DNA from: Hyphochytrium catenoides
Lineage: Eukaryota > Protista > Hyphochytriomycota
DNA length: 64,000 nucleotides
Assembly: GCA_900088475.1 (NCBI GenBank)
Contig: FLMG01002522.1
Span: 62,001 to 126,000, forward strand
Direction of reading: 5' to 3'
Below the pieces are notes generated by a model. That model searched no databases and was not told where the DNA came from. It saw only the letters and a list, made by a program, of their open reading frames with translations. The translations under genes and the position numbers were made by a program. Of this stretch, positions 6,766 to 59,012 are shown one piece after another. Within the stretch, counting starts at the first letter, position 1. Each line of letters begins with the position of its first letter.

Positions 6766-9700
6766 ATGACAGATCCACTCAGGAGCGGAGCGCTCTTCGG
6801 TCTGAAGAACCTGGATGTTCTCCGCTCTCCGGTTCCTCGTCTGGGTGGAGGAGGTGTATCAGCCGGAGTGGAAGGATCAGCTCAACAGGATGGAAAGAAA
6901 GGAATTCCAGCGTATCAACCGCAAAGCAGCCACCGGACAAACCAAGGTTAGCTACCTTTGTAGCTTCCACCTTGCTCGGTTTCTTCTAGTTTCGTTGTCC
7001 TTCTCTATCTGCAACGTTCTCAGATAACTCTCTCCTAAAGCATCTCTGTTGCTGCCTTCCTCTCTCGAAAATTGTCATATGAGTCTTCCTCAGTCATTCG
7101 TGCACTACTTACTTCTTCACACTGCTGATAGCAGCCCGATCTGTAGTAGGGGCAGCGGCGAGTACAGAAGCATGTGGCAGGAAGGCTACACCAATTATCA
7201 AACCGAAACCCTTCCGACCTCTTGCCCTTGGGTCCCTATCGTCATCCCCTTTCACCCTGAAGAGCCAACAGCAGATTCGAGAGAAATTCGAGCAGGTCTG
7301 TCTCTCCTCTCCTATCCCGAGAGTCATACAGCATGCTGCAGTCAAGCCTTGGAGCGCTCCACAGACAGCAGAATCCAAGAAAGATGAGAAGCAAAGAGGT
7401 ATAGGCATCAATATCTTTCTCAGTCTGCTGAATCTGAAGCCTTCGTTGCTTGTGTTGTCCCTCTACGTCGTCCTGAATGCTGCTTACCTGACGGGCCGCC
7501 ACTATTAACGTCGTCCATGCTCCGTCTCCTCTAACGTTTTTTTGGTGCTCTTCAGAAACCAATAGTGAAGGGTTACCGTCGATGGCTAGGACTGCGAAAA
7601 GTGGAAGAGAGTCTCTTGATGATGGTGCTAAGGAGACGGATAGCAAGGGGAAAAGAGTCAATGAAGGTGCCAATGAGAATTTGATTAGATCTCAAACCCA
7701 GTCAAAGGCCGAACGACTGGATACTTGTAAGCAACCGCTGGAAGATCGGGCGACGAACAAACGTCAGCATGCAGAAAGTAAAGCGCAAGGCTCATCATGC
7801 TCTGAGAGAAGCTCAGTCGAGAAGGTTGGGGACGATATGGCGTCCAGGCCAAGTAGCTTGCCTCAAGAGATAGACTTGCGAAGTATAGCTCTAGAGGGAC
7901 CAAAGAAAGCAGATCAGAGCGATGAGCAAAAAGTTAAGGAGGCAGACTCAAAACCAGCCATTCAATGCCTACCGAGTGACATCATTCTGACTTCTCAGTA
8001 CCCTAAGGAGGATAGCCAGGTGATGCCGCGTCAACGAGAGAAGATACAAGATCGAGGGGCGTCCAATTCTAGCGAGAAAGAAGTGGTTATAGAGCAGAAA
8101 ACGAGATCGCCCGTAAGGAACAAAGACGAAAAAAATTTGCCCCCTGAGGCATCTGAGAGAAACGGGGATGGAAGGAAGCCATCGTCGTCGCCAAGAAACT
8201 CGAAAGCGGAAAGAATCCAGAGCCCAATCAAGCCTTACAGTGCTGGGAAAGTGGCCAACTCTTCCCCAAACTCAACAGGGAAAGCAAACGGAGTTGCGAA
8301 AGCTCAGTCTAGCGATGCTCAAGAAGAGAAGGGAAAGACAATTACTCAGTCGCAAAAGGCGTCGGTTGAGGGTCATGCGCTCCCAATCCTTAACCTGGGC
8401 TCTCCGGAAGTCTGTTCCAAACCTCAGGCCCTACAAGAAGAAACTCTTTTGGCGTCTCAGGCTGTCGCCAAAGCTTCGAATACCTTAACGCATGATACCG
8501 GTTCTCTTCCTAGCGATTGCCAATCGAACGGGAAGTCCGCAGGGAAAGCAGATGCGAGTCCTGTGGCGTCGACCCAAGTTAAAGAATTATCCTCCTCTAT
8601 CAAGAGTAAGGACAAGTCCGTTGAAGGATATCTACCCGTAGAGGGTCGCCTAGATATGGAGGAGATGGAAGGAGAACCTCTGGCTTCTCCAACGACGGAC
8701 AAGATTAATCGTTCTCAAGTTAAGAGCTCTAGAAGGGCAGTGCGGACACCGCACCTTCCTCCCCGGCCTCGACCCAGGACGGGTACACGAGAACCTAGCG
8801 CAGGTAAGAAAGGCTCCGCGGCTTTCCCAGGAAGGCACGGACGTAAGACACTTATAAGAGATAGACCAACCTCCTGAAGCCTATAACGACTCAGAATGTC
8901 AGACATAAACAGTTAAGGAATGAAAAGAGAGTCAGAGGGTCAAGGGCCAGCGTAGTGACTGTCCCTAGAGTAATGAACAGGACTCATCACCACGTCCTTG
9001 AGAAGTGAGACTCCTTAAGCGGTCCACAGTCTAAGCCCTCTCCTCTGCCTTCAGCTCCACGACAGGACCAGGAAGCACTAGAAAAGACACCTGCTGACAG
9101 CGCAGTGGACGTTATCGATGAGACAAATAACGGGACGGGACGAGATGAAGAGAGACCGAAGAAGGATGATGGTGGAGACATTAGGGCCACAAGTGAGATG
9201 AAGGCCCAAGACCCCATCCACTCAACGCCTTCTCTCAACAGGCGGGCAGTCACGAGGGCCGCGAAGAAGCAACAAGGTGCAGGACACTCGTCGGCTGCTT
9301 CTCAAGCACCTCCTACCCCAGTACTCCGAGTCAGCGGAGCAGCAAGCATGCGGAAGAGAACTTTAGACAAAGCGGAGGGAGTAGAAGCCGCGATGCAGGA
9401 TAATGAAAATTTAAAAGGTGAAGAAACTGAGAAAAATGGGGACACACATGATGGACCGAAGCCGCCTGACGCAAAGAGGAGCAAAAAGAGAAAATCTCGA
9501 GCGGATAAAAGGACGCATAAAAGTATCAAGGCGGCAGTTGAGGCCGGAGAGAGCTTGAGGACGGCTGAGGAAGCTGAAAAGGAGGAACAGTCGCCCCGAG
9601 AGGAAGATCCAAGAGAGAATGGGAGTATCGAACCGGCTTTGACACGCGCTAGAAGAGCTTCTGGGGCAATAGCAGAAGACCAAGCCGCTCAGAAAACAGA

Positions 9701-12700
9701 GGACATCTCAGAGGCAAAGGACTTCCCGCTCGATTCGCCTACTGGTCTTCCAACTCAACCTCAAATTAGCAGCCCTAGGAGAATTGCAACAAGGTCAGCG
9801 GTAGCGGATAGCCAAAAGGCCAGCAAGCTTCTCGAGAAGTCGAGGAACAAGCAAATAGAGCCAAGAAGAACTCCGCGACTTGAAAAGAGACAGACTCCTC
9901 CCTTATTAGAGAAAGATCTGAAGGTATCACTGCTACGCTATGTCTAACACTCTAGCCCGCTAGTTTAATCACTCTAGTCTGCCTTTTCTAACACTCTAGT
10001 CTGCCTTTTCTAACACTCTAGTCTGCCTTTTCTAACACTCTAGCCATAATCGGCAACTCATCAAAGCCGATATTCGTCTGTCCTTCCTATTCCCTCACTG
10101 GAAGATGGGTCTATCTCATACCTCGCTGTTGCGCCTGATGACTGCAAGGCTCGCAGAGCTTTACCTGTCCTGTTGCATATCAACGTGAACTTATGCTTGC
10201 TTCACTCGTAGTTGACGTCCGATACTGCCTCCGCTCAGAACACTGTCAGTGCCGAAGAGCCTAAGTCTGGTGCGAAAACAAGTACCAATAAGGAAAAGCA
10301 GGCGAAGCAGCAGGTGGCCGCTCTTGTCACCCCCCCTCCCGCTGCTAAGCCCTTGGTAAGTCCAGACTCTACCAGCAAAGTTATTCGTCATTGATGTTCT
10401 CATTGCCTCTTTCTCTTCCCGCTTGTGAAAAGGCTCCAGTAGTACCACTGAGTGCAAGTGAAGTGCTGATTCCGATGGAGAGTCTCTCAGCTGGATATAT
10501 CAATGTAAGGACTCGGTCATTACCCACTCCTTTTGTGACTTTGACCCCATGTCTGGCACCCTTTCGCTACTCCGCTTACTGTCTGTTGCTTTGCTTCCCT
10601 TATTCTCAAGCTTTCAATGCTTCTCCCTTTGTGATAACCCTTGCTCTTTCCGATTTTTCAGCTCTCAAACACCTCTACCCTGCCTTTATTTTACCAGGGA
10701 ACATCCAGTAGGGGCCGACCCAGGTTCAAACCTGTCAGCTTTTGGACTAATGAGAGGATTGACTACCGCGGTGACCAACCAAAGCTGCTAACAGTGATTC
10801 CCCCGTATGTAATCTTCTCTTCCTTCTTTATGACATGGCTGGTCTAAGTTGCAGCTGGAAGATTCACTTTTCTTCTCTTTATAAAATCCGTCATCCTCTT
10901 CTCTTGCTGGGGTTGCTTTTGCCTAGTCTGATGTCTGCCTTACAGATCCCGTCCGTCCCACCACCGCTATTCTCTACCTGTGTATTAATTCAGTTTGACT
11001 CTTCGGTGTATCTATTCAGGGAGCCAGAAAGTGCTCGCAAAGCCTCAAGCTCCGTTTCAGCTATAGAAGAAAGAGGCAAGGATGGCTCTAAAGAAGCACC
11101 TAAAAGTGGAAAGAAGAGACTGCCGAGCGAGGTGGACAGCTTGGATCAAGCATCGACAGAGAAAAAAAGGAAAATTGCCGGAAAGAAGCTTGCGGAAAAG
11201 CAAGTCAAGGCTGCAAAGAAGACAAAGCCTAAATCCAGCGGACACCATCCCATTGCAAAGCCAACAATCGAGGGAAAAGCTGCAAAAGCAACTGAGAGCA
11301 AAGGAACCACTAGGAAAGGGAGGGAGGAGGGAAAGGTAAAAGTTACTACCAAGAAGAACCAACTGAAAGGAGGAGTCGGCACAATGGCGTCCGGAGAGCC
11401 AGAGAAGGGCAAGAAGAGGAGAGAAACGAAAGCAAAGGACACAGAGATTGGCGCGCCGAAGGCCGGGACTAAGAAAAAGNNNNNNNNNNNNNNNNNNNNN
11501 NNNNNNNNNNNNNNNNNNNNNNATGGCGTCCTTTAGCCACAAGCCATGCCTTCCTTAAGGTCAGATCACGATAGCCACCTTTCCTCATAATCTTCAAGCC
11601 TACCAAGCTGTCTTTTGAAACTGTCTTTTGCTGAAGCAAGTTAAATTTTATCCTTATTTTCCATCCGAATGGGCCTGTTCCGTCTCTGATCTTCATCATT
11701 AGCAGGACACAAGGCCAAATATCCCCCAAGAAAAAAGCACTTGGACTGGTCTACAGCTGAGGTCGCTAAGAAGGTGACAACAGAAGCGAGACCCAATAGC
11801 ATCGCGACTGGTCGATGCTATACGCTGATCTTGCTTCTGTCTGACCCCCTTTTCTGCTATCCTTCATCATCTTCATCATTGTCTTCCTCTAGTGCGTATG
11901 CCATGGTGGACCCTACTCAGCAAAACTTCTGGAACTTGGTGAGCATTGCCTACTTTTACCTATGCTCGTGTCTAAAATGACTTAAACAGTGCATGGCACT
12001 TAGATTGCCCGATCTTCTTTCATTGAGTTATCCATACGTTTCTCCTCGACTCCTTTTCTACTTCTGTTGTCTTGTCCATGCCTGCATCTTGTAGCAAAAC
12101 GAGACCTGACCTCGAGATGAACCTTCCTTTGCGGTCCTTCTAGGTGGCGGAGCTCGTCCCCGGCAAAACCGGTATAGAATGCCATCAGAAGTGGTTTGAG
12201 AGGTTCCAGTCACCAAAAGAAAAGAAAAGAAAGAGAGGAGCCGACACTCCTGCTCAGTGGGAGGAGGATCCAACAACCACCAAGACTCCAAAGCTTGCCA
12301 TGGCCAAAAAAGGCACTTTAAAAAATAAGAGACAACTCAGGAACTATGTTGAGGAGGTAAGAGACGCTCCCGTGCAGGCGGATGGAAGTGGGAACCAATG
12401 TTTGCTGCGCGCCTTTCTGCATTCTCCCCGCAGTGCCTCTTTGGGCAAAGCCTGCTTGTTTGAGAACTCTGATACGGTCATCAATTCTGCCTGGGCGTTT
12501 CGAACTAACCTTCTTCGTAACGAGGATGACAAGCCTAAGCAAATTACCGACAAGCTCCCGCTCTTACCTCTCTAGGCATCTAAAGGCGTCGACGACGATA
12601 TCTTCGACTCAACTCCATTTAGAAGTCGAGGGTCCACTATTGACTACAAAGGCGTGGATGACATAAAGTCTCCTGAATACGTCGCGCCATCACCGCTCGT

Positions 12701-18498: not shown

Positions 18499-21400
18499 CT
18501 AGTCGGTGGTTAGCGCCGACAGTGAATCTGCGAACCAGTTTGTTCCCCTTGCAGGCTCCGGCCGCTTGATTACGAAGAGGCCCACTTCACATTTAGCAAT
18601 CTCTAAGGTCTTTCCTCCATCCTTTGCCTTGCCCCTGCTGACCGCCATCACGGCCACTCCTGAGATCATTGATGGACCGAGCGTTTTGTCTCCGAGTGAA
18701 CCGGCCATAATATCGACGTACGATGTGTCTGTCTGTCAACGCACTAGAAACTCTAGGGAAGGACCTTAATGGGAGCGGTGTCCTATGTGCGCCTAGCCAT
18801 TAAGTTAGGCACATCTTATCCCTATCATCCCGCTTACAAGGTCTGGGAGGTATTGCTGTAAAGCTCGATGCCACCTAGCCTCTCCGCCAACACTCGTTGC
18901 AATTGCGGTCTGATGTCGGGAACAACAGCGAGGAAATTCTCAAAGCTTTCAACTGTCAGCGAAAGCAGCAAAGAATCCTGCCTTGCCACGACAGTCGCCG
19001 TACGGGGCTTTCTATCGATCAGTGCTAACTCTCCAATCCCCTCGCCTGGAGAGCACCATGAAAGGATGAGAACATGGCATAGGGCAGAGAAGGTAGTGGG
19101 AGCAGGGAAGGGGATGTCCTCAAGTGTTTTTCGCACAGATTTCAACATATTGCCCTACCTGGCCGTAGCTGCTTCACCTCAGCCTCGACGATCTGACCTT
19201 CTTGGTCTTGCCTCTTTAGTACGGAGCAGAAACCAGACAGAAGGATAAAGAACTTGCTTCCCTTGTCCCCTTCTGTATAAACACATCCTTTAGATTAACT
19301 CCATATCGCGTTATAGGTGGCCCTTCACTTTTCACGTCATTCTTGTGGAACACTTCCATCCCCCTAGTGGTATGTCGCTGTCAAAAAGATGGCATAAGGT
19401 AAATCCCCTGCTTACTCTTCTGCCTCCTTCTCGACGATTTGCCCCTTTGAGACTTACCCTTAAAGATTTTGGTGCCAGCATCTATGCTTTCAAACCTGAA
19501 GAGCTCCGCCAGCAGCTGCCACTCTCTCGCATTGGGCTGCTGGACGAGGCTTTGGAAAAACGGGATTCTCAAAATCGATTGAGCCATACGGCCACTTGCA
19601 ATGTTCATGAACGTCTTCTTTAGCTCTGGGAAGATCTGAGTTTGCCCGGGAAGGACAATGAGTGTAAATAATAGTCTAGGTTGCACAGTGAGAATTGTTT
19701 GCGGCCACCATAAGAGAGTACGCAACGGCTGATCAAAGCAGAGATGGTCACCAGGTAACCCATTACCAATCACGCGTAGCTTTGGCCACGACAAACTTTA
19801 GAATAAGAGGTCGGGAGATGGAGGTGTCAGACCTTCAAAAACTTGTCAAACTCCTCTGCTCCAAGCCTAAGGAGCGTACAGGGAGAAGTCGCCCTCGCAC
19901 TCGATACCCATGGTCTCGGTCGCAGTAACGAATGCTCGCCAATGTATTCACCCCGTCCAAGGTGCCTGAGAGAGACCTGCGTATGGATGATTATATAAGC
20001 CAAGGGTTTATCCAAGGTAAAATACCTCGTCCACGGAAACCTCATAAAGTTGACAGTAAATCGACAGTGTGACGTGAGCAAATCCGCTTCTATCAAGTGT
20101 GAAGCAAGAAGCCCAAAAAGGCGGACAGGAAGAGGTAGCATTGAGGCAGATGATCGTAGAAGTGGCATACGGGGGAGAAGCGGTTCAAACAGGAAACAGT
20201 ACCTCTAGCCCATTCCTATTTTTGGTATAGATCTCTAGCTCGCCATTGACTACGAGACAGAAGCAAGCAGCCATTTCTCCCTCCCGGAAGACCTGTGAAC
20301 GAGGGGTGTGCTTAGCTCCAACATTGAGGCAAAAACTGCTCAGGTAGGCAAACAAACGAGAAAAAGAAGGGACAACGGTGACCCACATCTGCTGCTGGAT
20401 TGTAGTGCTGCATTTTGAAGAGAGAACCCAGAACTCTCAGCCTGCTGTCATCGAAACCTCGAAACAAAGCCAGTGCAGATAGAGCAGATGGCAGTCTCAA
20501 AGAGAATAAATACGCGAGATTGGAGCCAAGATCCGGCATCTTTCGGCTGAGGGCATCAAGATTCTCTCTACCAAGTGTTCGGTGGTAGCGAGCCGCGCCA
20601 TACGGATATCCAAGTTAGAGGTACTGGACATGATGGCTAAAAATACTGAAGGAGAGCACAAGCCTCACCCGGAAAGGCACAGCAACGTCGACGGAACAGA
20701 CGAGATCATTGACAGCTGCATTGAAGCATCCCTATCGACGTTGGCAGAGCCTAAGGGCAAAGAACTCTCGCCAAAGTGATCAAATGGCCCCATTTCGTGA
20801 AGAACCAAACTCCCATTACTTGACTGTCTTTCGTGTACTCCTTCAGCATCTGAATTCCAAGCAATGCTCACTCTTCCGGACAGAATGACAAATATCTCCT
20901 TTTCCTACAGCCCAATTATATGGACAATGTGAGAATTGTGAGTGAGAGACAGATAGCAATGGAAGCAAGGGGGCTTGAGAGATAGTATTAGGATGTGCGA
21001 GACTATACCTTTTTCAGAGGACTATGTAGGGGAACTTTGGCTGAAACCTGTCTCAACTGCAGGAAGTTCCCAAGTGAGACCAAGGCATTGTGACTGACCT
21101 GTTCACCGTAACATCAGCTACAATCAATTCGCAAGCTGATACAGTTTACTGGTAGAGTATGATGGGCGTAAGTCAAGCAAGCATAGCTCTGCCAAAAGAG
21201 AGAGAACCACACGTCTACAGAATAGCCGAGAAGGAGATGAACACTGAGCGAACGGTTTCGCCGCAGGGGCTCTTATTTAACGGCGCAGGACGCTTCGAGG
21301 ATAAGGACTAGGTAAAGAAGAGCAGGTAGAAATTGGAAGGAAGACCCGGACGAGGCCGAAAAAGCGTAGCAACAAGGCAAAGAGTTTCCAGGCAGACTAG

Positions 21401-24400
21401 GATTCAATAACGGTAGAGAACAGGAGCAGGAGAGCAGAATAGAATCAAGCACCTTTCTTGATGCCAATTCCTCTTCAGGCGTCACTATCAATGAGGCTGC
21501 AAAAAGGGGAATGCGCAGAAGGCTTTCTGCGCTGAACAGAGAGAGAGCAAAGACCGGGATATTTCCACTGATTCTCTCCCAGCTTGACAACTGATGCTGG
21601 GTCGGGGCCCGAAGCCTCAGCATTGCATACACCGGCGCATGGTCGCTGGACCTGAGACGAGGCTCGTGGGCGTAGGTATCACAGATTATCTGTCAGGTGA
21701 TGGAGATATGGATTGGTCAGAGAACACAACTTCAGGAGCTTCAAGCGTCCCATAGGAAGGTTATCGAGTGGTAGAGGCCACTGGAAAGGAGAGCAGACAT
21801 GTAATGGTCCCAAGTGGCAAAGCAGAGGGAAGGGAATCACAAGTAGTGCAGGAATCAGGCGGAAATAGGTTATCCTCACCTCAACTTCTTCTGATGTACG
21901 TTCGGGGGATCTCCATAAGATCCTGTCCGTATAGCTTGGCGTGCGCTGACTAGTTTTGCCTTCCCCGTCATCGACCTGGAGGCTGTAGCATCTTTGTATA
22001 CGGAATGGGCATTAGACCCAATCCCTTGCGCTTTTCTTATTTCATGCTCCCCCTAAATCTTGATAAAGTCCCTCATCTGATACTTTACCAAGGTCCTCAC
22101 CTCTTACTTCTTTAGTCTTGAAGTTCCCTAACAACTCTACTTCACGTTCCTAACCCTAACCCCACGTGAGGGAACCCAGAAGCCCATCCAGCTCTTGCCG
22201 ATCAGTGTTTGCTTTTGCGGTGTCTTAGGTTTGGCGTGCTGTGCATGGCTAATCTCTTTTTCTATCTTGGGTGGGCCGTTCCCCGAGGCTGCTAATTTCT
22301 CACCTTCTGAGCTCCGCTAGATCGGTATAGTCACCAGGGTCCGAGCCCACGATTCTCCTGAAGGTTGGCGGGAATGTGATCCTGGCCTCGTGAAAGTCTT
22401 GAAGAACTGCGCCGTCGTCCATAGCTTTTTTGAGCTCATCAGCCTTTATAAGCGTCTTCCAGGAACCTTTTTCGCTTCCTTCACTCTTCACGCCCTGTTC
22501 TGGTTCATCTCTACCTAGATCTGCCTGCGCAGCGGCCGCAATGGCTTGAAGTGCCGACTCTGGCTCCATGTTGAGGCGATAATTGAGATCACCAAAGAGG
22601 ATGACTACGCCGTCATAAGGCGCTTTACGGTCTCCTAACCCTAACCTATCCCGCTCGAGCGTCTGGGCATACTGGTAGTCACTCCGCCCATGGCGTTTAG
22701 GGCCGAAGGAGCGAAGATCCTCATGAGGAGGCTCCTTAGCTCTATCAGTGGTCAAAGTATCTTTTCCTTTCGCTTCCTCACTTCCGTGGTAACTATCGGT
22801 TGAAGCACTATGGAGTGGTGGCCCCTTACTCGCTGCTCGTCCTCTTTTTCCCTCATGCTCGTCGACCAGAGCCGAAGAATAACGCTCAGAACTGTTGGAT
22901 GTAGGTGCTCTACTATTGTCTTCATTATAGGTCTGCAAGGGCAGCGTATGGAGGTTAGACTCTAAGAGTTGCGAACAAGTAAGGTGGAAGAAGATGATTA
23001 GGACCACACGGTAAAAGGTTAACACATCCAGAGCTTTCTGGGTTCCTAAGAACTGTCTACGTGTGTCTGTTTCTTGTGGTCATTTCTGCGTTACCTTATC
23101 GTCGAATTCTGCTTGCTGATATAAAGATTGAGATGTCCCGCCTTCTCCTCTTTCCTGCCGCTCATCACCTTCACCTGTGAAATCTTTGAGGTTACCAGTT
23201 CAGGTACTTTCTGCTAGAGTTCCAAGCGGTCGATCTATCCCAGATGTCGTACGCCTTTACCATCCATTTGCAATAACTTCATTTTCTCCCACATGCGCGT
23301 GGGGACCTCATTGCCCTCTTACCGCGTTATTCCCCGAAGCTACAAACCCAGCACTTATCTTGTTCCAGAAGCTCTCTACGTACCATCAGGGCTTGTTTCC
23401 TTAGAGACACTATTCTGTCTCCGCCAGTGGGCGTTATCCAGGCCTAAGTCTTTGAGAATCTCTTTGATATCCTGGTTCCTTTTGGTCAGGAACGATTTCC
23501 CTGTGCGCACACGAAGATGACGGAAAATGATGATTAGGAGCATCGTCCATCGCTGTGGCCCTCGCACACGGAATGCGTTGCTCCTTGTTATGCTGCTAAG
23601 CTTTGGAAAAGAAAGAAGGGACAGAGGCTGCAAACTCGTTACTTTGTAGGAGCATACGCACAGAAGTAAGGGGCGATAGAGCCCGGTAAGGTGAAACCAT
23701 GAAGGCTGGAGTAAGGAAGCCAACGATGTAACCTTTCTGATCCGCAGCGAGATGGCACGTGACGAAAGTTATTTTTGTATCGCGATCTGCGCTTGCACCC
23801 TTGGGGGAAAGTGTGATCGGAAGAGTCAAGCTCACAGCACCCTTATTGCTGGCCCGAGCTACACGGAGGTCCTTTCCCCTCTTCACGGTTCCCCTGGATG
23901 GGAAGGGAAGTTATTAGAATGAGGTCACCACTCAAAACTACAGCATCGCGGGTCCTGCCTCCGGGGCGTAACCTCCACTAGTTCCGTCCTACTCACCTCA
24001 CAATCTCTTCTCCACCCCTGACAAATTCAGCTTTGACAAAAACAATTAGTGCAATGTAGCCATGGTATCCAAGCGTCTTGTTGGCACTTCCTATTTCGTG
24101 GCAGAAGTCCAAGTAGTCGCCCTTCAGACAAGCTCGAGCAGCTATAACAAGGAAGAGAAGAATAGAGTCAACACTAAGATAGAAAAGCGTCAATACGAGT
24201 CAGCCCCTTCCTGCCTGCTCAAACCTGTTCTCTTACCCTGCTTGAATTGCTCCGTGTCCATACATTCCTGGACGCCGAATGCATAAAGATCGCAGTGAGG
24301 AGGCACCCAGAAAGATAAAGAAGGGGAAGGAGCCTCTCCCATATTCCAAGTGGCAACAAATATCTTCAGCGACACAAGTGTACGGGACGAGTCGAAGGTT

Positions 24401-27186
24401 GACTCCGCTAACATCACAGCGAGAATGGAAGAATAATGAGCAGGCAAAATAGGGCTGAAGTGATATGATGTGTAGTCAGCGGCAGGTGAGCTCATGGCTG
24501 CCTAAAAGAATAGGTTTATGAAGGATAAACAAAGTGTAAGAGGCTGTACCGGTTTGAGTCGCAGCTAATGGGGCCTCCTCCTGCATGGATACGGCTGGAG
24601 GCAAGAGATGGCCTCCATAATGCTTGAAGAGTTTTCTCTGCAGCACGTGCGTCAGAGTTCAAACTCTAGTCCTCTCCTGTCGTATCTTGCGATTGCTCTA
24701 TCAACTACGGCGGCAGTACTCAAAGCTCAAAGTGGCAATTATTTTCGTCTATTCTTCCCTTTCGGCGTCTTGACTACGTTGAAGCCCAAGTCCGTCCCCA
24801 ATTATGTCACTATTTGATGCAAGTATCGCGCGGACTCTTACCTCTGCAGCGATGCAGCTCTCAATATTCCAAGAGATTGCAGCTACCCAGCTCTCGGCTT
24901 CCTGTCGTGACTCACAAAGAAGTGAGCCCCGTTGAGTAGGAGTTTGGATTGTGAAAATTCTGCTCTTGTCTATTTGTACAGGCTGGCTGCCTTCAGTTGG
25001 GCAATGCTCTGCCTCTGTAAGCAAGAAGAGGTAGGGGAGAGGCACAATCGGTAAGAGGAAGCGGACAAAAAGGAAAGGAATGAGAAACCGCGGCATTCAA
25101 GTGAGAAGTTGCCAAAGTACCAGGAAAGCCATCACCGCTTGGAGACAGCGCCTGCTATGGCACAATAAGAAGGAGCTACACATGCTGACCTTTGGCTATT
25201 TCGTCCTCTTCGTCGCCTGCTTCTACGTCATCTCCCTTATGGCCCCTGCTAGGCGCTTCTGGACCTCTCCTCTCGCCCTCCTTAATCTGTGTTTTCAAGT
25301 CCTGGATAACTTCCTCGGAGCGCCCGAGCAGAGTGATGCTATGCGGCAGCAGGATAGTCGCTCTTGGCTCCGAATCTGAGGGCCTACGTTCGACACAATT
25401 AGCATTGACACAGGCAGCCAAAGAGGAAACAAGTTCTCCATGGAAGGCATAGAGTTTGTGGTGGTGCTTGTTACCATAAGCGTAGCGGAAGCAACACCCA
25501 AGGGAAGAAGAGCCACGTAAGTTTAGGTATGACTGAGCTGAGAGGAAACGAATGGCGACTGCGATTGAGAGAAAGGTTATAATCAGACCTCTTATAGATG
25601 AGTAGTCTGGTGCTTTCTAGCACGAGATACGCCCTCCTCCAGGACTTGACAATGGAGCCTGTGCGCCATAAAAGGCACAGCAGCTTGTGAGATGACAACC
25701 AAGGGCAAAGGGCACGAAGTAAAGTACGTGACGGCACACAAGAGATGAGATATATGGAGCCACAGACCTTGGTGCCTCTGGACCCAGCCTTCCTTTCTCA
25801 CGAATGCATTATCGAGGTTATCCATAGCCTCTCTCTGTTCCATAACAAAAAATGAGAGACTCAAGGAAAGAGTAGAGGACGCAAGAAATTACGGAGAATA
25901 GAACGCCACAGTACACCAGAGACCACAACTGAAAGGGATAAGCAGGGAATGGGTTGAAAATCTAACCCATTAACAGTGCCAGCAATGAGCGCCGACGCTC
26001 GAGTGTGCCGTAGCTGATTACCTGTGGAGGCGTCTGACTCCAGTCCTGAAGGCAACCGTCCTGTTTTTGAATAGCTTCGAGACAGAGTCGTATACCCAGG
26101 ACCCAATGCATGACCTCCTGCCAACTAGGAACAGGCGGTTAGGCTTTCCAATTGGCAGTGATACCAGTTGCAAAATGAGGAAGGATGCTTGAAGAGGAGA
26201 TGAGCCAAGCAGGAAAACAGTTTCTTGAACTGAATCGCCTCACGATAGCGGCAAGAGTCCATAGGGGATAATAGTCACATGAAGGAGGAGGTAAAAGCAG
26301 AGGTATTGGGTGTAAGATGAGAGGCAAGGGGAGAACTGAAGTAGATTGATAGCCAGGGAACAAAGTCTATGTATCTACAATAGACAGCAGCTCCATTCTT
26401 CGCATTCGTTGAAACGCAGAGAAGAACTGACAGGAAAGGAAAGAGAGAGGAACGGGATCGAGAAGAGCTAAAGGTTGACAGGTATCTTTTGAGGAGGAGT
26501 CAGCAAAGGGAATTGACCTATAGATGGGGCAAAGAGATGAACGGGAAACCTCGGATTATGAGTACTAAGAAGATCTTTGTTCTGACAGGAGGCAGGACCC
26601 CTTCAAGTTGGAGCGAGAAGGAAGGCACTAATAAGGAGGGAAAGGAATAAGAGCTCGACCTGGGAGCTTTGAAGACGAAGGAGCGCTTCTTGGTGGTTAC
26701 TTCAAATTGAGCCTTATCCCCCAATGCGCCGGGAGTAGCGGCAATGACATCTTTAAGACTGACTGATCCGCGTGGCAAGCTTTCTCCAGGCTTAAAGTAT
26801 AAGATCTGCGTCGCTGTCAGGACAAGCAGTCGATCCTTCCAGTCTGGCGACTTGCGACCCTACGAAGCATGTAAATAATAAACCCCGACGTAACAGACGC
26901 CGAAGTCAGTGAGCCACGAATGTTTGAGAGAGTGAAGGCCTAGACGCGAAAGATAGGTGCAATGAGCAGCATCAAGCGAGGGCTCTGCGGTTCACGGCCG
27001 CTGCACCTATTGAAGGCCCATTGAAGAGAAGAAAGAGTCTAGACAGCACGAGCCGATGGTATGGTCCTGGTAAGAAGTAGCAGGAATGTGGTATGCAGAC
27101 ACCTTCTTCTTTAGCCCTCCTTTCTTGATGGGTCTTTCAGGCACAGGTACAGAATGACAGCGCGACGCGACTGACTGTTGGTCCAT
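18499..27186 (-). CDS. Multi-domain protein: PH-PH-inositol polyphosphate 5-phosphatase-three cyclic-nucleotide-binding (cNMP) domains
   Basis: PH1: IKKGGLKKK/GRKSPDWKDRLLVLT..FEVTTKKRSFVFKAP. PH2: RKEGWVQR..WRRAYLVL..ESRQEAESWVAAI. 5-phosphatase: IFVATWNM, FGVQEC, NKGAVSL, FVTCHLAA, FGDLNYRL, ITFPPTF, RTPSYTDRILW, SDHAPV. cNMP: FVILSGRV..HFGESSL; VFREGE..GEYIGEHSL; GEGIGELALIDRKPRTATVVA. Domain junctions join in frame through GT-AG introns. Confidence 0.9.
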
Positions 27187-27849
27187 ATTAGAAGTCCTGA
27201 TCAGACCAGCGTGCCTTCTGTTGTTGACTAAGATCAGCCAACGAGAATCAGTCGAGGCTAAGAGTAAGGGGCTTGTGCACTGAGCTCCATAGACTCGGTC
27301 GATACGGTTTGGAGCCGATAGGAGCTACTGAGGGACCATGAAGATAGGGTTAGCAGTATTCGCCCGCGCAATAGAGCTGGTCATGCAGTGCCACCTGCCA
27401 CTGTCTGCTTTCCTTTCTCCCTTTCGCTTAGTCCCTTGTGTCTTCCGCCTTCATTGAGCTCTCCTTGTCTCCGCTTCTTTCTCTCTCTCTCTTTCCCTGG
27501 CTCTTCCATACGCTTTTGCCCTGTGATCCAGCTGCTCTGTCCGCTCCCGCAGTGCATTTGCCTGACACACCTTTTCTCTCTTCGATGCCCGCCGAGCCGC
27601 CGTTCGGCTGCTCCTCTCGCGCATCCTCTCTCCTCTCCTCTCACGGAGGAGTTGACCTACCTCAGGTCATGGCCTTTCACACATCACCAATCCGTCAAAT
27701 CGAACGTCTACGAATTCAAGTGAGAGCCTTGCGATAATAAATGTACGCGCTGAAACTGCAAAAGGTGAAATTGTGATAACGGGTAACGGCGATATACGAG
27801 GAAGAATCTTCTGCGATCAGAAGCAAGAGAGCAAAAGACAGAGCGAGAG

Positions 27850-27898
27850 GTGAAGAGAGAGAAAGTGAGAGAGAGAAAGAGGAAGGAGAGAGGGAAAA

Positions 27899-27930
<32 letters not shown>

Positions 27931-28035
27931 GAAAGAGAAAAGAAAGAGAAAGAGAGAGAGAGAGGAAAGAGGAAGAAGAGGGAGAGAGAGAAAAAGAGAG
28001 AGAGAGAGAGAAACAAAGAAGAGAGACACAGGGAG
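27850..28035. repeat. Almost pure purine (GA)n-rich tract between divergent genes
   Basis: About 185 bp of GA/GAAA repeats. It explains the spurious ER-rich and SL-rich ORFs in the track. Confidence 0.9.
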
Positions 28036-28293
28036 AAAAGAACAACAGACACTTGACAACAGAGAGGCGAGGGACCAAAGGCGACAGATAAAAAGTTCTA
28101 GGATCCAGATAGGATATTGCCATGCCGCTCTCGGGACTCGTCTGGGCTGGAGACCTAGAGCCACGGCCAGAGTCTGAGTGATCGTCGTACAGTAAGAAGC
28201 AGAAGAGAAAGAGAATGGCCTGACGTTCGAGAGGAAGCGGCCCTGCAGACAATCAGGACGCAGCGGACCAAAGTCTAGATCTTCACGGTGCGG

Positions 28294-50994: not shown

Positions 50995-51155
50995 NNNNNN
51001 NNNNNNNNNNNNNNNNNNNNNNNNNNNNNNNNNNNNNNNNNNNNNNNNNNNNNNNNNNNNNNNNNNNNNNNNNNNNNNNNNTTTAACTGCAGCTTTTGCT
51101 TTCGAAGCCCTGCGTGTGGGCCAAGAAGGCAGTTGCCATTGATCTCATCCCCAAG

Positions 51156-54100
51156 ATGGCCAGCAATACCGCCATCAGTGTCTCCAACTTTGCTAAAATC
51201 TCTGCCCATTGCTTCGGTTTCACGGAGGCCGTCTACCTTTCGGATGGTGAACATGTCGTCACTGCGGGTGCTGATGGCATGGTCAAGCTTCTAAGCCTTC
51301 CGGATGGGAAGGAGATCTGCTCCTTAGAATGCGACAGCGAGGTGGGTCTTCTGTTTCACTTGTGGCATCATGCCTAGTGGCCTTATCTTTGGAGTTCCTA
51401 CAGATCACCGCACTAGCAGTCAATGACGCTGCAACGCACGTCTATGTCGCCACCGATGAGGATAAAGCTGTGAGATCTTACAAGTTTGCAAAGGATAATG
51501 ATAGTACAAGCTTAGTATTCGACGACCTGGTTTTTCGAGCGACTACTCAGATCCGTTACCTCGCCATTAGCAAATCGCACATGTGAGTACTCGTCAAGCT
51601 AGCGCAGCACTATAGATGTGAGCTCACGTTCAGGACTTACGCTATATAGAGCAATCTCTGGGAGCTTCCCTACAGTGCAAGTGCTGAAGCTTGACGACAC
51701 TACGAATACCAAGGTCTTAAAAGGCAACTCCGGCTCGTCCGTCTACAGCTCGGCGTTTGATCCAAAGGATAGGTACTTGGCCACCACATCGGATGATGGA
51801 AAGGCTAGGGTTTGGAAGTTACAGGATAAAGAAGTAGAAACGATGTTTGAGTACATTGACCCCTCAGAAAGGCTCAACGACGGCATGCTGGGACGGCTCG
51901 CCTGGAGTCCAGACGGCAAATACCTTGCCCTGCCAGGGCGAACTAGTATCGAGATCCGTGCCCGAGATGCCTGGGCCAAGAGCTTCAAGCTAGAAAACGG
52001 TCATACCGGTCTCATCACATTCGTCACATGGTCTCCCAACTCGCTTTACGTGGCCTCAGCAGGACTAGACAAGAAGGTCAGTGCTTCGTGGCTTCTAGCA
52101 TTACCGAGCCATGGGAATGCCTTCATCTTCATATCAGGGGACTATCGGATGACTCGCGTTCTGATAAGGCTGTCTTGACTTTTCTTAGCGTTTGTTTACC
52201 TTGGCCATTGCCTGCGTCCACAGCTGACCGGGTGTGTTTTGCAGGTAGTGGTCTGGGACACTGTAAGCAGGGAAGTGATCAACACATACAGCTTTCTGAA
52301 CGACATTTCAGGGATGCAATGGAATCCTAAGAAGAATGAGTTAGGAGCGGTGGACTTCGATGGGCAACTGGTCTTGCTAAAACACGTTATTCCTGGCAAG
52401 ATGACCAGCCCTACGTCGTCCCCGGAGGAGACGAAGCACGCCGGACCCTCATCATCGTCTTCTGCAAAGGAGACCTCGGCTGAGTCACACGCCGTGGCGA
52501 CCACGGCGAAAGAGACGGCTGGGAAGGGAACCGGCTCGGCTATGGGGGCTAGTAATGAAAGCAAGAAACCTGAGTCTAGAACCCCGGAGGATGGGACTGT
52601 CAGCGTGGCTGCTATAAAGCGTAGCCTTGGGTTCACCGAGGAGGGAGCGATGACTGAGGATTTTATTTCCGCCGCGGAGGTGGAAGGAGAAGAGGTCGGT
52701 AAGGAGGGAGAAGTGGGGGTTGCAGAACGGCCGTACCTCCTCCACCGCACGCCCATGCAAGATGCCTTTCAACCTGGCTCTACACAGCCGAAGAGGAACA
52801 AGCAGATATTGGTATGGAACACCCATGGAAGCGTAGAGTCCCTGTCCCATACATCTGACGAAGAGAAGGATGGAGCTTCATATAACTCTGTAAGAATAGA
52901 GATGGCGGATAGAGAAGCCTTTCGCCCTGTGCGAATATCGGACTACTTTGGCTTCTCGATGGCCGCGCTCAACCCGCAAGGGGNNNNNNNTCAGAGAGGG
53001 AGAAGAGGCGGAAGTGGTAGCCCTAAGTGACCACTGCGTAGCTGTTGGCACTAGCAGAAACTATGTACGGCTGTTTACCCTCAGGTAGGCGGAACTGAGG
53101 AATATGTTGTCCAGTCCTGTAGCTCTGGTTGCTTTCTCTTTTAATTCCTCCTTCTCTCTCTCTCTCTCTTTCTCTCTCTCTCCCCATCTCTCTCTTCCCT
53201 CCCGCTTTCTTTCTAACTCTTTATCTCTGTTCTCTTCTGTCTCTCTCTCGATCCCCTCTATCTCTCTGATGGTTCTCTTCCTTACTACTGCATAATCAGC
53301 CTCTCACCCTCCTCAACATTTTCTCCCATATCGGAACTGAGCTTGCCTTTCTTTTTTGTATTGTCACCTGAAGTGGCGCTCAAGATGGGATTATCATGCT
53401 TCCCGGCCCTCTGGTCTCTCTTGCCGGATCTGGCCCCTTGTTGGCCGTGGTCTATCATTGTGGCGAACCCTTCAACGAGACACAGAATTTGGGTTTCAAG
53501 CTCATGAACATCGTACAAAGGAGGGAGATATGCGCAGGTAAACAGTTCTAAAGGCGGCTGAGCTAGTAAGAGACCTAGATTGATAAAAAAGCTCATTGAG
53601 AAAGTGACCCCCGTGGGAGGGAGCTCTCCACGAATACAAACGCCAGAAGGAAAAGGGATGCGGGTGAAGGGACACGCTCTAATCTTCAGAGTCCTCGAGT
53701 AACTCATGTCTGTACCTGTAGGAACTTTGCCTGTGGGGATTGGCAGCAAGCTCACCTGGTTAGGCTTCTCAGACCGGAACGTCCTTTGTGCAGGAGAGTC
53801 CTCAGGTCTTCTGCTGGGACTGATACCTTTTGCTGGGTGGTAAGTGCCGTAGGAAGAGAGCCTGGTTGGCCTAAATCGAAAAGCAAGAGACATGGAGAGG
53901 AAGCGGTGTAGAGCGGAAAGGTGCTGGAACAAAGCGCGATGCAAAATGAGCAAGCGGGAATGAAGGAGCTGGAAGAAGGGGCCAGGGAGGGTTTCTTCGA
54001 CAGACACTCAGTCCCACAACTATCCTCTTTATAGGCAATGGACACCTCTTCTTGATACTGCCCTTCAGCGCCGCAACCCTTCAGACTCTTACTGGTTCAT

Positions 54101-57397: not shown

Positions 57398-59012
57398 ATG
57401 AGCAGCAGCAGCATCAGTATGGCGGAGGAAGGGCCAGAAATAAGCTTTGCAGGGCCAGAGGCTGAAGAAGCAGAAGGTGATGGAGGTGNNNNNNNNNNNN
57501 NNNNNNNNNNNNNCAGCAATGCCCGTCACGGGAGCCGACACAACGTTTCCCTGTTGGTTTGAGCTGCTCTTCTGGGACACGGCTCTCTTTCCTGTTATGG
57601 CTCTTGTCCTGTTCTGGTCTATCCAATTCTACGTGAGGCAACGGTACAATCACGATCTCTACGAAGGAAAGCTAGCCACGTGGCCCTTCCGCTATCACCG
57701 CCTTCTCTCTTCTCCGGCGCCCATTATCTTTTTGTCTCTGTTTCTCTGGCTATTCGGTTGGCTTGGAGTTATCCCGAGAGCTGTGAGGACGGTTAGCAAC
57801 TGGGGCGAACCAAGCGGGACTTTAAGCTGCAAGCAATTTGAGCTAATTGACGTAAGTTCCTTATCCATGCCTGGCTTACACTGGTCCACCTCTTCACGAT
57901 AGTTAGCTTGCCATTGCTGTCCTTGCACTATCCGTCAAGCTCTGTCATCTTTATGCCCGGGTCTTCTTATCCACCGTCTGCCCTCTTTCTATCCTCCGTC
58001 CCTCGCACTCTCATAAATGTGCTCTCTCTTGTTGATAAGGCATTGGCTCTTTCCTTTTCTCATCTTCCCTTGCAGGAGCCTCTGGACATACTGTCTTCGC
58101 TAGTCCTTTGTTTTTGCACTGCCGTCACTTCGCAGGCACTTCTCTCCTTTCAACCGCCTGAGGTGGCTAACATTAGGCGACGCTTACATCACGCGGCTCT
58201 GTCTATTTGCTGCGCGTTTATGGCAGTGGACTCTCTTGCTCTGTCCTCCTCTCTTCTTCCTCCTAAAGCTTATGAATATGTGTACTCCTTCACAATTTTC
58301 ACCTTTTCCCTGTGCCTTCACCTCTACTCTTGGACCTTTACCTGGCCCCTGGTGCGGGACTCCTACCTACAAGAGATGAGGGACTTTGCCCTGCCAGGCG
58401 TAAGAGTGAACAGAGTAAGCCCTGATCTCTCGTTTAATGCTAAGAAAAATGGCGGCAAGGAAAAGAAGAACTTGGTGACACGGCAAGAGCTAAGAGAGGC
58501 TCTCTATTCTTCAGAGGAGACGCTGGAAGAGTTTGTTAAATACCTTTGTAAGGTGAGGAGACCCCAGTTTTTCTTTATCTTCTTCCTTGCCTGTGCCTGC
58601 CCCCATTGCGGCACTGCCTGTCTGCTTCTCCACATGTTGGCTAAAATTGATCTACTTCTACTACTCTGCTTCCCTGTTGCTCCAGGAGTTAGCCGTAGAG
58701 AATGGTCTGTTCCTTCAGCACCACCGGAGATTCTTACACTCTCAGGACTCTTGGGAACGCTTCAACATTGCTCAGGACATCTTTGCATTCTCTCTCGAGC
58801 CTAATGCACCAGCGCGTCTAGACCTGGGTGCCGCTCTAAGGTCCGAGGTCTTGGAGGAAGGGAAGAAAATAAGAAGAGGCGAAGAGATGTCTCCTGACCT
58901 TTTCCTTGAGGTTGAAGGTCAGGTCCTGCGGTGCCTGGCCGATCCGTACAAGCGCTTCCTGAGGGAAAAGGCGAAGGCCCACGTTTCAAGCGGGAAAAAA
59001 TTGACATTCTAG
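57398..59012 (+). CDS. Multi-pass membrane protein with a C-terminal RGS domain
   Basis: About 5 hydrophobic helices, then LEEFVKYLCK/ELAVENGLFL..AQDIFAFSLEPNAPARLDLGAALR..DLFLEVEGQVLRCLADPYKRFL. Introns 57852-58075 and 58553-58686. Start is uncertain because of the N gap at 57489-57513 (alternative ATG 57519). Confidence 0.8.

Follow-up and report, generated by a model that had tools for sequence, protein, structure and literature searches.

Gene structure and domain order

The DNA analysed here (the window) is a 64-kb stretch of the Hyphochytrium catenoides genome (contig FLMG01002522.1, positions 62,001 to 126,000 of the forward strand), eukaryotic, intron-rich and with a G+C content of about 49%, whose minus strand carries what appears to be a single gene fusing an inositol polyphosphate 5-phosphatase to cyclic-nucleotide-binding (CNB) domains. 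Pfam profiles run on stop-to-stop pieces of the minus strand gave a colinear series of matches, namely PH, PH, Exo_endo_phos2 (the 5-phosphatase) and three times cNMP_binding, and this check recovered every domain that a first-pass annotation of the locus had named, in the order it had claimed. The gene would extend from an ATG at 27186 to a TAA at 18834 and encode about 1,300 residues in more than 20 exons; as the main explanation of the locus, and including the mechanism proposed in the Discussion, we assign it a probability of roughly 0.58. The predicted order of the protein is PH1, PH2, inositol polyphosphate 5-phosphatase, a conserved linker, CNB1, CNB2 and CNB3. Homology points to a single transcript.

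Introns of the GT..AG type that keep the frame open were enumerated between the confident coding blocks, and the exons were then assembled. From the linker between PH2 and the phosphatase to the stop codon, the model comprises 16 exons and 15 introns, all of them GT-AG, with 2,979 nt, 992 residues and no internal stop. Counted from this linker on the minus strand, exons 1 to 8 occupy 24637-24550, 24407-24237, 24141-23997, 23893-23733, 23500-23384, 22961-22304, 21991-21880 and 21689-21453, and exons 9 to 16 occupy 21098-21009, 20904-20669, 20567-20387, 20310-20191, 19976-19833, 19635-19458, 19287-19159 and 19045-18834. The continuous spliced frame claimed earlier thus holds for the C-terminal 992 residues, but between PH1 and PH2 there are several weak paths instead of one.

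The individual joins of that claim were found as well. The donor at the end of the PH2 exon (..IESCIAAE/gtaaga) leads to the linker exon RKLFKHYGG..APLAATQT (24550-24637, minus strand), and this exon joins the phosphatase start AESTFD.. at 24407; both junctions are canonical GT-AG, the flanking introns being GAG/GTAAGA...CAG (204 nt) and CCG/GTACAG...TTAG (142 nt). Further downstream, SDHAPVYA and the first helix of the CNB region, AESLLRIPLFAAS, lie in one exon with GT-AG borders (21689-21453), and the 90-nt phase-0 exon 21098-21009 is joined by canonical GT-AG sites to EKEIFVILSG at 20904.

The frame closes at the TAA at 18836-18834, 16 residues past CNB3 (stop codon checked), and a metagenomic homologue, P0042, which is described below, ends at about the equivalent of 18834. 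The first-pass annotation had carried the coding region on to 18499. This additional stretch (18499-18833, minus strand, with an open reading frame (ORF) at 18499-18708) has no Pfam match, is not required for an open frame and would be reached only through an optional donor at 18875. We therefore place the coding end at 18834 and consider 18499-18833 to be probably 3' untranslated region.

At the other end, the ATG at 27186-27184 is the first one following an in-frame stop. It opens exon 1 of the gene (27103-27186, minus strand), which contributes the first strand of PH1 (..ERPIKKGGLKKK), and the donor AAG/GTGTCT of this exon leads to the acceptor at 26859 in a clean join yielding GLKKK/GRKSPDWKDR. 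Exon 2 (26660-26859, minus strand; GRKSPDWKDRLLVLTATQILYFKPGE...FVFKAP) holds the core of PH1 with a basic motif of the K-Xn-K-x-R type, and the Pfam PH match extends over 26521-26859 (E 2.9e-08; 34.6 bits against a cut-off of 25.1). In tblastn, PH1 also matched the N-terminal PH domains of P0046 (E 3.4e-4) and P0066, two members of the sister clade to the window's phosphatase. Given this match and the shared strand, PH1 is likely to be part of the gene.

The region linking PH1 to PH2 (25835-26426, minus strand) contains two candidate exons, 26426-26379 (SSSLRFNECEEWSCCL, a C-terminal helix of the PH type) and 26124-26022. PH2 itself is encoded by about four exons between 25834 and 24842 on the same strand (25834-25768; 25658 onward; the ..ATILLPHSITLLG.. 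block to 25190; 25014-24842) and was detected as two consecutive halves of the Pfam profile, at 25474-25797 (profile positions 7-54) and at 24752-25096 (63-104), with 22.2 and 17.1 bits. The first junction within PH2, GWVQRHQ/G-SIVKSWRRAYLVL, has canonical GT-AG sites and the junction 25190/25014 scores well; the intron between 25560 and 25383 is placed only approximately.

The 5-phosphatase and its junction with the CNB domains

The catalytic domain is encoded by six exons between 24407 and 21880 (minus strand; Pfam Exo_endo_phos2, PF22669), and the profile is matched in four colinear pieces (positions 2-48, 104-141, 169-238 and 244-267). Its best matches among solved structures are SHIP2, SHIP1, INPP5E and OCRL, with SHIP2 and SHIP1 closest. 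The metal-binding Asn and Glu are found in IFVATWNMGEA (FIGTWNMGS in SHIP2) and in DLYAFGVQEC (DLYVIGVQE in INPP5E). The first signature motif, LFGDLNYRL, is located in exon 22961-22304, where the Pfam match has an E-value of 6.9e-13, and the MGDLNYRL of P0042 aligns to FGDLNYRL of SHIP2; the second, RTPSYTDRILW, is identical in P0042, which aligns here to PSWCDRILW of SHIP2. The Asp-His pair and the mid-domain His are present in SSDHAPVYA and TCHLAAD, respectively, and TSDHSPVF of P0042 aligns to the same residues of SHIP2. The motifs GDLNYR, RTPSYTDRILW and SDHAPV had previously been read as intact, and TWNMGE and GVQEC can be added to them. Judged by the retention of all these motifs, the 5-phosphatase is predicted to be catalytically competent. 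Candidate substrates may be phosphatidylinositol 4,5-bisphosphate (PI(4,5)P2, PIP2), inositol trisphosphate (IP3) or, by analogy with the nearest solved relative SHIP2, a 3-phosphorylated lipid.

A low-complexity insertion rich in Ser, Glu and Lys (22623-22961, minus strand) is open in frame ahead of GDLNYR. Including the end of the previous exon, it amounts to about 130 residues between ..ILKDLGLD and ..GDLNYR (22623-23410). At the same loop, an insertion is also present in the uninterrupted ORF of P0042, where it is shorter, and in PH-5-phosphatase relatives, where it is larger, with up to about 470 residues (P0030). The insertion has the appearance of a disordered loop specific to this clade, perhaps with a regulatory role.

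The transition to the CNB domains is contained in a junction exon of 237 nt (21453-21689, minus strand, GT-AG), which encodes the phosphatase end SDHAPVYAMLRL, the linker ..SSWERISGNIPVFALSLFSAESL and the first CNB1 helix LRIPLFAAS. This exon matches P0042 with an E-value of 1.7e-15 (phmmer), and 30 of the 76 columns of the junction-exon alignment are invariant. The linker from the phosphatase to CNB1 is 31 residues long (RAPTQHQLSSWERISGNIPVFALSLFSAESL) and shares 48% identity with P0042; the corresponding values are 44-50% in the catalytic core and 26-31% in the CNB domains. This level of conservation, which equals that of the active-site domain, suggests that the phosphatase and the CNB domains are joined by a mechanical link under constraint. 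In SHIP2, the C2 domain that directly follows the phosphatase contacts it, raises its activity and is described as an allosteric activator (PMC5550278); the CNB array of the window occupies the position held there by C2.

The cyclic-nucleotide-binding domains

Matches to cNMP_binding (PF00027) fall into three sets, at 20668-20904, at 20188-20436 with 19830-20204, and at 19145-19294 with 18837-19154. Beyond its first helix, CNB1 extends over 20669-21098 (exons 21098-21009 and 20904-20669, minus strand). It is divergent, its cassette FGESSLPLGSANVDRDAS exceeding the canonical length by three residues, and is colinear with the first CNB domain of P0042 (CNB-A), whose cassette is four residues longer. 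CNB2 (19833-20567, minus strand; exons 20567-20387, 20310-20191 and 19976-19833) gave 24.1 and 35.5 bits, has the cassette IGEHSLLRPRPWVSSARA and retains the Gly-rich segment FREGEMAACFCLVVNG. CNB3 (18834-19635, minus strand; exons 19635-19458, 19287-19159 and 19045-18834) gave 20.6 and 34.4 bits and is followed by the TAA. Its Gly-rich beta-roll segment YTEGDKGSKFFILLSG is present, the EGDxGxxFYxxxxG pattern being found in both CNB3 and CNB2, and its cassette GELALIDRKPRTATVVA fits FGE(L/I)AL...(P)R(T/S/A)A(T/S)V and aligns with the cassettes of SthK, the PKA regulatory subunit (PKA-R) and Epac. Three cNMP-binding domains, as annotated earlier, are thus detected by Pfam, but the canonical phosphate-binding cassette is restricted to CNB3.

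The second and last CNB domain of P0042 likewise has a canonical cassette (FGEVALLQESVRTATV). It resembles CNB2 (63.9 bits) and CNB3 (60.1 bits) about equally, and these two therefore probably arose by a duplication specific to this lineage, with loss of the Arg in one of them.

When the CNB half of P0042 (residues 372-709) was modelled with AlphaFold2, two beta-roll domains were obtained at a mean predicted local distance difference test (pLDDT) score of 81.8; the first 18 residues of the model, which belong to the linker, are of low confidence when folded in isolation. In Foldseek, the model was closest in fold to PKA regulatory subunits and to the CNB-A/B tandem of PKG (E 1e-21 to 1e-20). 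The template modelling (TM) score to solved tandems is only 0.3-0.5, because the relative orientation of the domains differs, though each single domain matches. By sequence, the best match of the CNB domains to a solved structure is 9ya0_MA (PCR12, TGME49_219070), a Toxoplasma multi-CNB protein of 2,736 residues, and not PKA or PKG. This match suggests that multi-CNB arrays are common in alveolate and stramenopile groups.

A metagenomic homologue with the same fusion

The 222-aa phosphatase exon served as query for an exhaustive HMMER search, which returned 80 matches; each of these was then tested with every exon peptide. There was no near-identical protein among these 80 weak matches, and the proteins of the window's genome and of its close relatives therefore lie outside the searched protein library. 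P0042 was the sole protein of the 80 with CNB domains, and it matched the phosphatase, junction and CNB exons. It is an uninterrupted ORF of 709 aa from the JGI metagenome sample 3300059473, automatically named 'CRP-like cAMP-binding protein', in which Pfam finds Exo_endo_phos2 (1.2e-32) and cNMP_binding (3.7e-30), arranged as phosphatase, linker and two CNB domains. In blastp, the alignment of the 992-residue model took in P0042 over its full length of 709 residues (E 1.7e-107), with 36% identity over 687 aligned positions. Several splice choices of the model, made independently of P0042, are mirrored in its sequence, with AELR/RCYSLQV corresponding to TLRKCYTTQI, LSG/ENLDAL (acceptor 20567) to ISGEEFAKL, and GGEEIVR/GTVKRG to ..GENHVKKQEVKRG, and the 90-nt exon of the window has its counterpart within the continuous frame of P0042. 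The bridging exon and the colinearity with this uninterrupted ORF make two adjacent genes very unlikely, and we agree with the earlier annotation, at high confidence, that the phosphatase and the CNB domains belong to one gene.

The ORF of P0042 begins within the phosphatase domain, at a point that corresponds to intron 24237/24141 of the window, and a 265-aa ORF on the same strand ends 50 nt upstream of it; P0042 is thus a truncated gene call. P0197, the other member of its 90%-identity cluster, comes from the same sample. P0042 and P0197 have in common with the window the 5-phosphatase clade, the insertion site, the linker W[DE]RISGNxPxxALSxF and the position of the CNB domains directly after the phosphatase, but they possess two CNB domains instead of three, and an uninterrupted ORF where the window has 13 introns.

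Within the size range covered, 390-1,241 residues, searches with the whole of P0042 and with its CNB half gave no further protein with both domains; these queries would miss an independent fusion in another 5-phosphatase subfamily. No related locus was found in prokaryotic genome contigs, and metagenome contigs scanned with the junction alignment and with P0042 yielded no match, P0042's own contig being missed as well. P0204 (945 aa) matched the CNB domains strongly and was rejected as a family member, as it has at least five CNB domains and no phosphatase. It has no other Pfam domain, and its gene (L002:10001-12838; ENA contig k79_102746) adjoins dynein heavy-chain and CFAP97 genes of an environmental eukaryote. 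P0204 may be a flagellar protein with multiple CNB domains, and it has no connection with the phosphatase fusion.

Thirty-five catalytic domains were placed in a careful maximum-likelihood tree rooted on vertebrate SHIPs, in which the window and P0042 formed a pair (ultrafast bootstrap (UFBoot) 91, Shimodaira-Hasegawa-like approximate likelihood ratio test (SH-aLRT) 94). This pair was sister to a clade of PH-5-phosphatases (UFBoot 87, SH-aLRT 92) within the radiation of the GPCR-INPP proteins, in which a G-protein-coupled receptor (GPCR) domain is fused to an inositol polyphosphate 5-phosphatase (INPP). The support for both groupings is moderate. The nearest matches fit a stramenopile origin of the window.

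Comparison with known proteins

The sister clade (P0013, P0016, P0026, P0030, P0046 and P0066; 1,365-1,863 aa, from environmental assemblies) is uncharacterised. Its members resemble the window in that their N-terminal PH domain is homologous to PH1 and that their catalytic domain carries an insertion at the corresponding position; in their C-terminal tails of 600-800 residues, neither a CNB nor any other Pfam domain was found, even at E-values up to 1.

Among named proteins, the catalytic domain is closest to the stramenopile GPCR-INPP bigrams of Phytophthora, Saprolegnia, Nannochloropsis and Platysulcus, fusions that have been described but are uncharacterised (van den Hoogen et al. 2018, PMC5784254); GPCR-INPP fusions from environmental sequences are also among its nearest matches. 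The idea of attaching a sensor directly to a 5-phosphatase is common to both. In the bigrams, however, a cAMP-receptor-like GPCR with seven helices (Dicty_CAR) at the N-terminus is the sensor, whereas the window combines N-terminal PH domains with soluble C-terminal CNB domains. The relatives P0001, P0041 and P0200 do carry an N-terminal seven-transmembrane domain. In the window, Pfam gave no 7tm or Dicty_CAR match on any exon piece, no membrane helices were present in the exons examined, and the N-terminus consists of the two PH domains, which sets the gene apart from the bigrams.

SHIP2 and SHIP1 (INPPL1, INPP5D; 3nr8, 5okm, 5rw2) resemble the window in the motifs TWNMG, GDLNYRL, PSxxDRILW and SDHSPVF, which align, and SHIP2 also has a regulatory domain directly after the phosphatase, which is C2 there and CNB here. 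The SH2, C2 and SAM domains of SHIP are not part of the window's protein; Pfam gave no match to SH2 or C2, and it is CNB domains that come after the phosphatase, which places the gene outside the SHIP subfamily. SHIP matches cover about 23% of P0042 at about 36% identity. Substrate preference is not transferable.

PKA regulatory subunits, PKG and Epac are tandem CNB regulators, with sequence matches at E-values of 1e-18 to 1e-11. They control a kinase or a guanine nucleotide exchange factor, whereas the CNB domains of the window are predicted to regulate the lipid or inositol phosphatase to which they are fused. An inhibitor or pseudosubstrate segment of the PKA-R/PKG type is absent from the window, and two of its three CNB domains are divergent. 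Ci-VSP offers an analogy only. It too has a sensor fused to a phosphoinositide phosphatase by a short conserved linker, but its PTEN-type fold and its voltage sensor are both unrelated.

No description of a CNB-5-phosphatase fusion was found in the open-access full-text literature, in agreement with the first-pass annotation, which knew of none. The protein searches gave one metagenomic cluster with this layout.

Surrounding DNA

About 700 nt upstream of the start codon, the plus strand contains a pure purine, GA-rich tract of 114 nt (27900-28013; wider region 27700-28250). It gives rise to spurious 'SLSLSL' ORFs in several frames and is probably low-complexity DNA of an intergenic or promoter region. 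Runs of N that mark assembly gaps are located at 11480-11522, 50995-51081, 52984-52990 and 57489-57513, none of them within the gene studied here. Two long open frames rich in Lys, Glu and Ser on the plus strand (9105-9947 and 10835-11536) may represent coding exons of an adjacent gene whose product is a charged protein of the nuclear type.

Discussion

The combination of a 5-phosphatase with CNB domains described here is real, rare and undescribed, and makes a plausible cyclic-nucleotide-regulated 5-phosphatase. The mechanism that we infer takes in nucleotide binding, regulation and its direction, the substrate, membrane targeting and the inclusion of PH1. The PH domains would place the enzyme on membranes that contain phosphoinositides, where the SHIP-like 5-phosphatase would strip the 5-phosphate from a phosphoinositide or inositol phosphate. 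The C-terminal array of PKA-R/PKG-like CNB domains would act as an allosteric regulatory module at the site where SHIP2 has its activity-enhancing C2 domain, and binding of cAMP or cGMP, chiefly at the canonical CNB3, would switch the phosphatase by a signal that passes along the CNB helices and the conserved linker. Judged from sequence, we rate the chance that a cyclic nucleotide regulates catalysis as even or slightly above. More tentatively, at somewhat less than an even chance, the protein may represent a new class of cyclic-nucleotide effector, a membrane-targeted 5-phosphatase that is switched directly by cAMP or cGMP at its own CNB domains, and whose fusion arose once in a stramenopile-type lineage and was kept in at least two distant organisms.

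Several observations weigh against the main explanation. The fused transcript is a prediction from genome sequence and homology, and its layout occurs in only one other 90%-identity cluster, that of P0042 and P0197 from one metagenome, so that purifying selection on the combination is not measurable. From PH1 to PH2 (26426-25834), several GT-AG paths exist, all of them weakly scored and thus ambiguous, and translation of a shorter protein could begin at an alternative internal ATG (25843). Among the three CNB domains, at most one site is canonical. CNB1 reaches a Pfam E-value of only 0.0076; FGE is retained, as is an Arg, which however stands three residues further along, and of the EGD.G segment only ..EKEIFVILSG remains. 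In the cassette of CNB2, a Trp stands opposite the phosphate-binding Arg of the CNB cassettes in the PCR12 chain of 9ya0. Finally, the Thr of the RTAT cassette does not discriminate cAMP from cGMP.

These features of the CNB domains lead to the rival explanation that survives best, even if we consider it unlikely, namely that the fusion is real but that the CNB array serves as a scaffold, a dimerisation module or a module for another ligand instead of sensing cAMP or cGMP, as in KCNH channels and the cAMP-independent PKA-R of trypanosomes. The replacement of the cassette Arg by Trp in CNB2 fits this explanation, as do the weak profile match and longer cassette of CNB1, which on its own had no match in the PDB, and the fold matches of the array include trypanosome PKA-R proteins that bind nucleosides and not cAMP. 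However, CNB3 retains all canonical elements, including VYTEGDKGSKFFILLSG and GELALIDRKPRTATVVA, and the last CNB domain of P0042 is canonical too. An intact cassette retained in both lineages argues for ligand binding.

Rather improbable, in our view, is a cyclic nucleotide that does bind but controls localisation or partners, by recruitment, oligomerisation or partner release, and not the catalytic rate. Two PH domains already suggest control of localisation, and the relative orientation of the CNB domains is not fixed in the model (TM 0.3-0.5). A linker as conserved as the catalytic core, and a CNB array in place of the allosteric C2 of SHIP2, nevertheless fit direct coupling to catalysis better.

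We consider it very improbable that the gene model is an artefact of two neighbouring genes, one for a PH-PH-phosphatase and one for a CNB protein, or that the transcript ends after exon 21689-21453. Past the donor at 21453, read-through does reach a stop at 21276, and a short isoform is conceivable. Against this, SDHAPV and the first CNB1 helix are encoded in the same exon, P0042 has the same order in one ORF and aligns over every downstream exon including the one of 90 nt, and the frame stays open across eight more GT-AG introns until the canonical CNB3 is reached. Just as improbable is a decaying pseudogene, or a PH1 that belongs to another gene, since the degenerate CNB1 and CNB2 and a PH1-to-PH2 path not closed with strong splice sites are set against 992 residues in 16 exons without a frameshift or stop, catalytic residues that are all intact, and the homology of PH1 with the N-terminal PH of the sister clade.

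To our knowledge, cAMP and cGMP act directly on only a small number of targets, comprising PKA, PKG, Epac, channels of the CNG/HCN type and a handful of others, and the modules that steer 5-phosphatases are SH2, C2, PH, ASH-RhoGAP and Sac1, with GPCR modules in oomycetes. The significance of a further fusion is tempered by the promiscuity with which CNB domains combine with other domains in this lineage, and by the finding that just one of the three sites looks canonical. If the proposed mechanism is true, the gene would encode a kinase-independent shortcut from a cyclic nucleotide to the turnover of PIP2, phosphatidylinositol trisphosphate (PIP3) or IP3 within a single chain, and would offer a natural template for a tool to deplete phosphoinositides under the control of cyclic nucleotides. 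It would also add to the picture that water-mould-like stramenopiles fuse sensors, be they GPCRs or CNB domains, directly to second-messenger enzymes.

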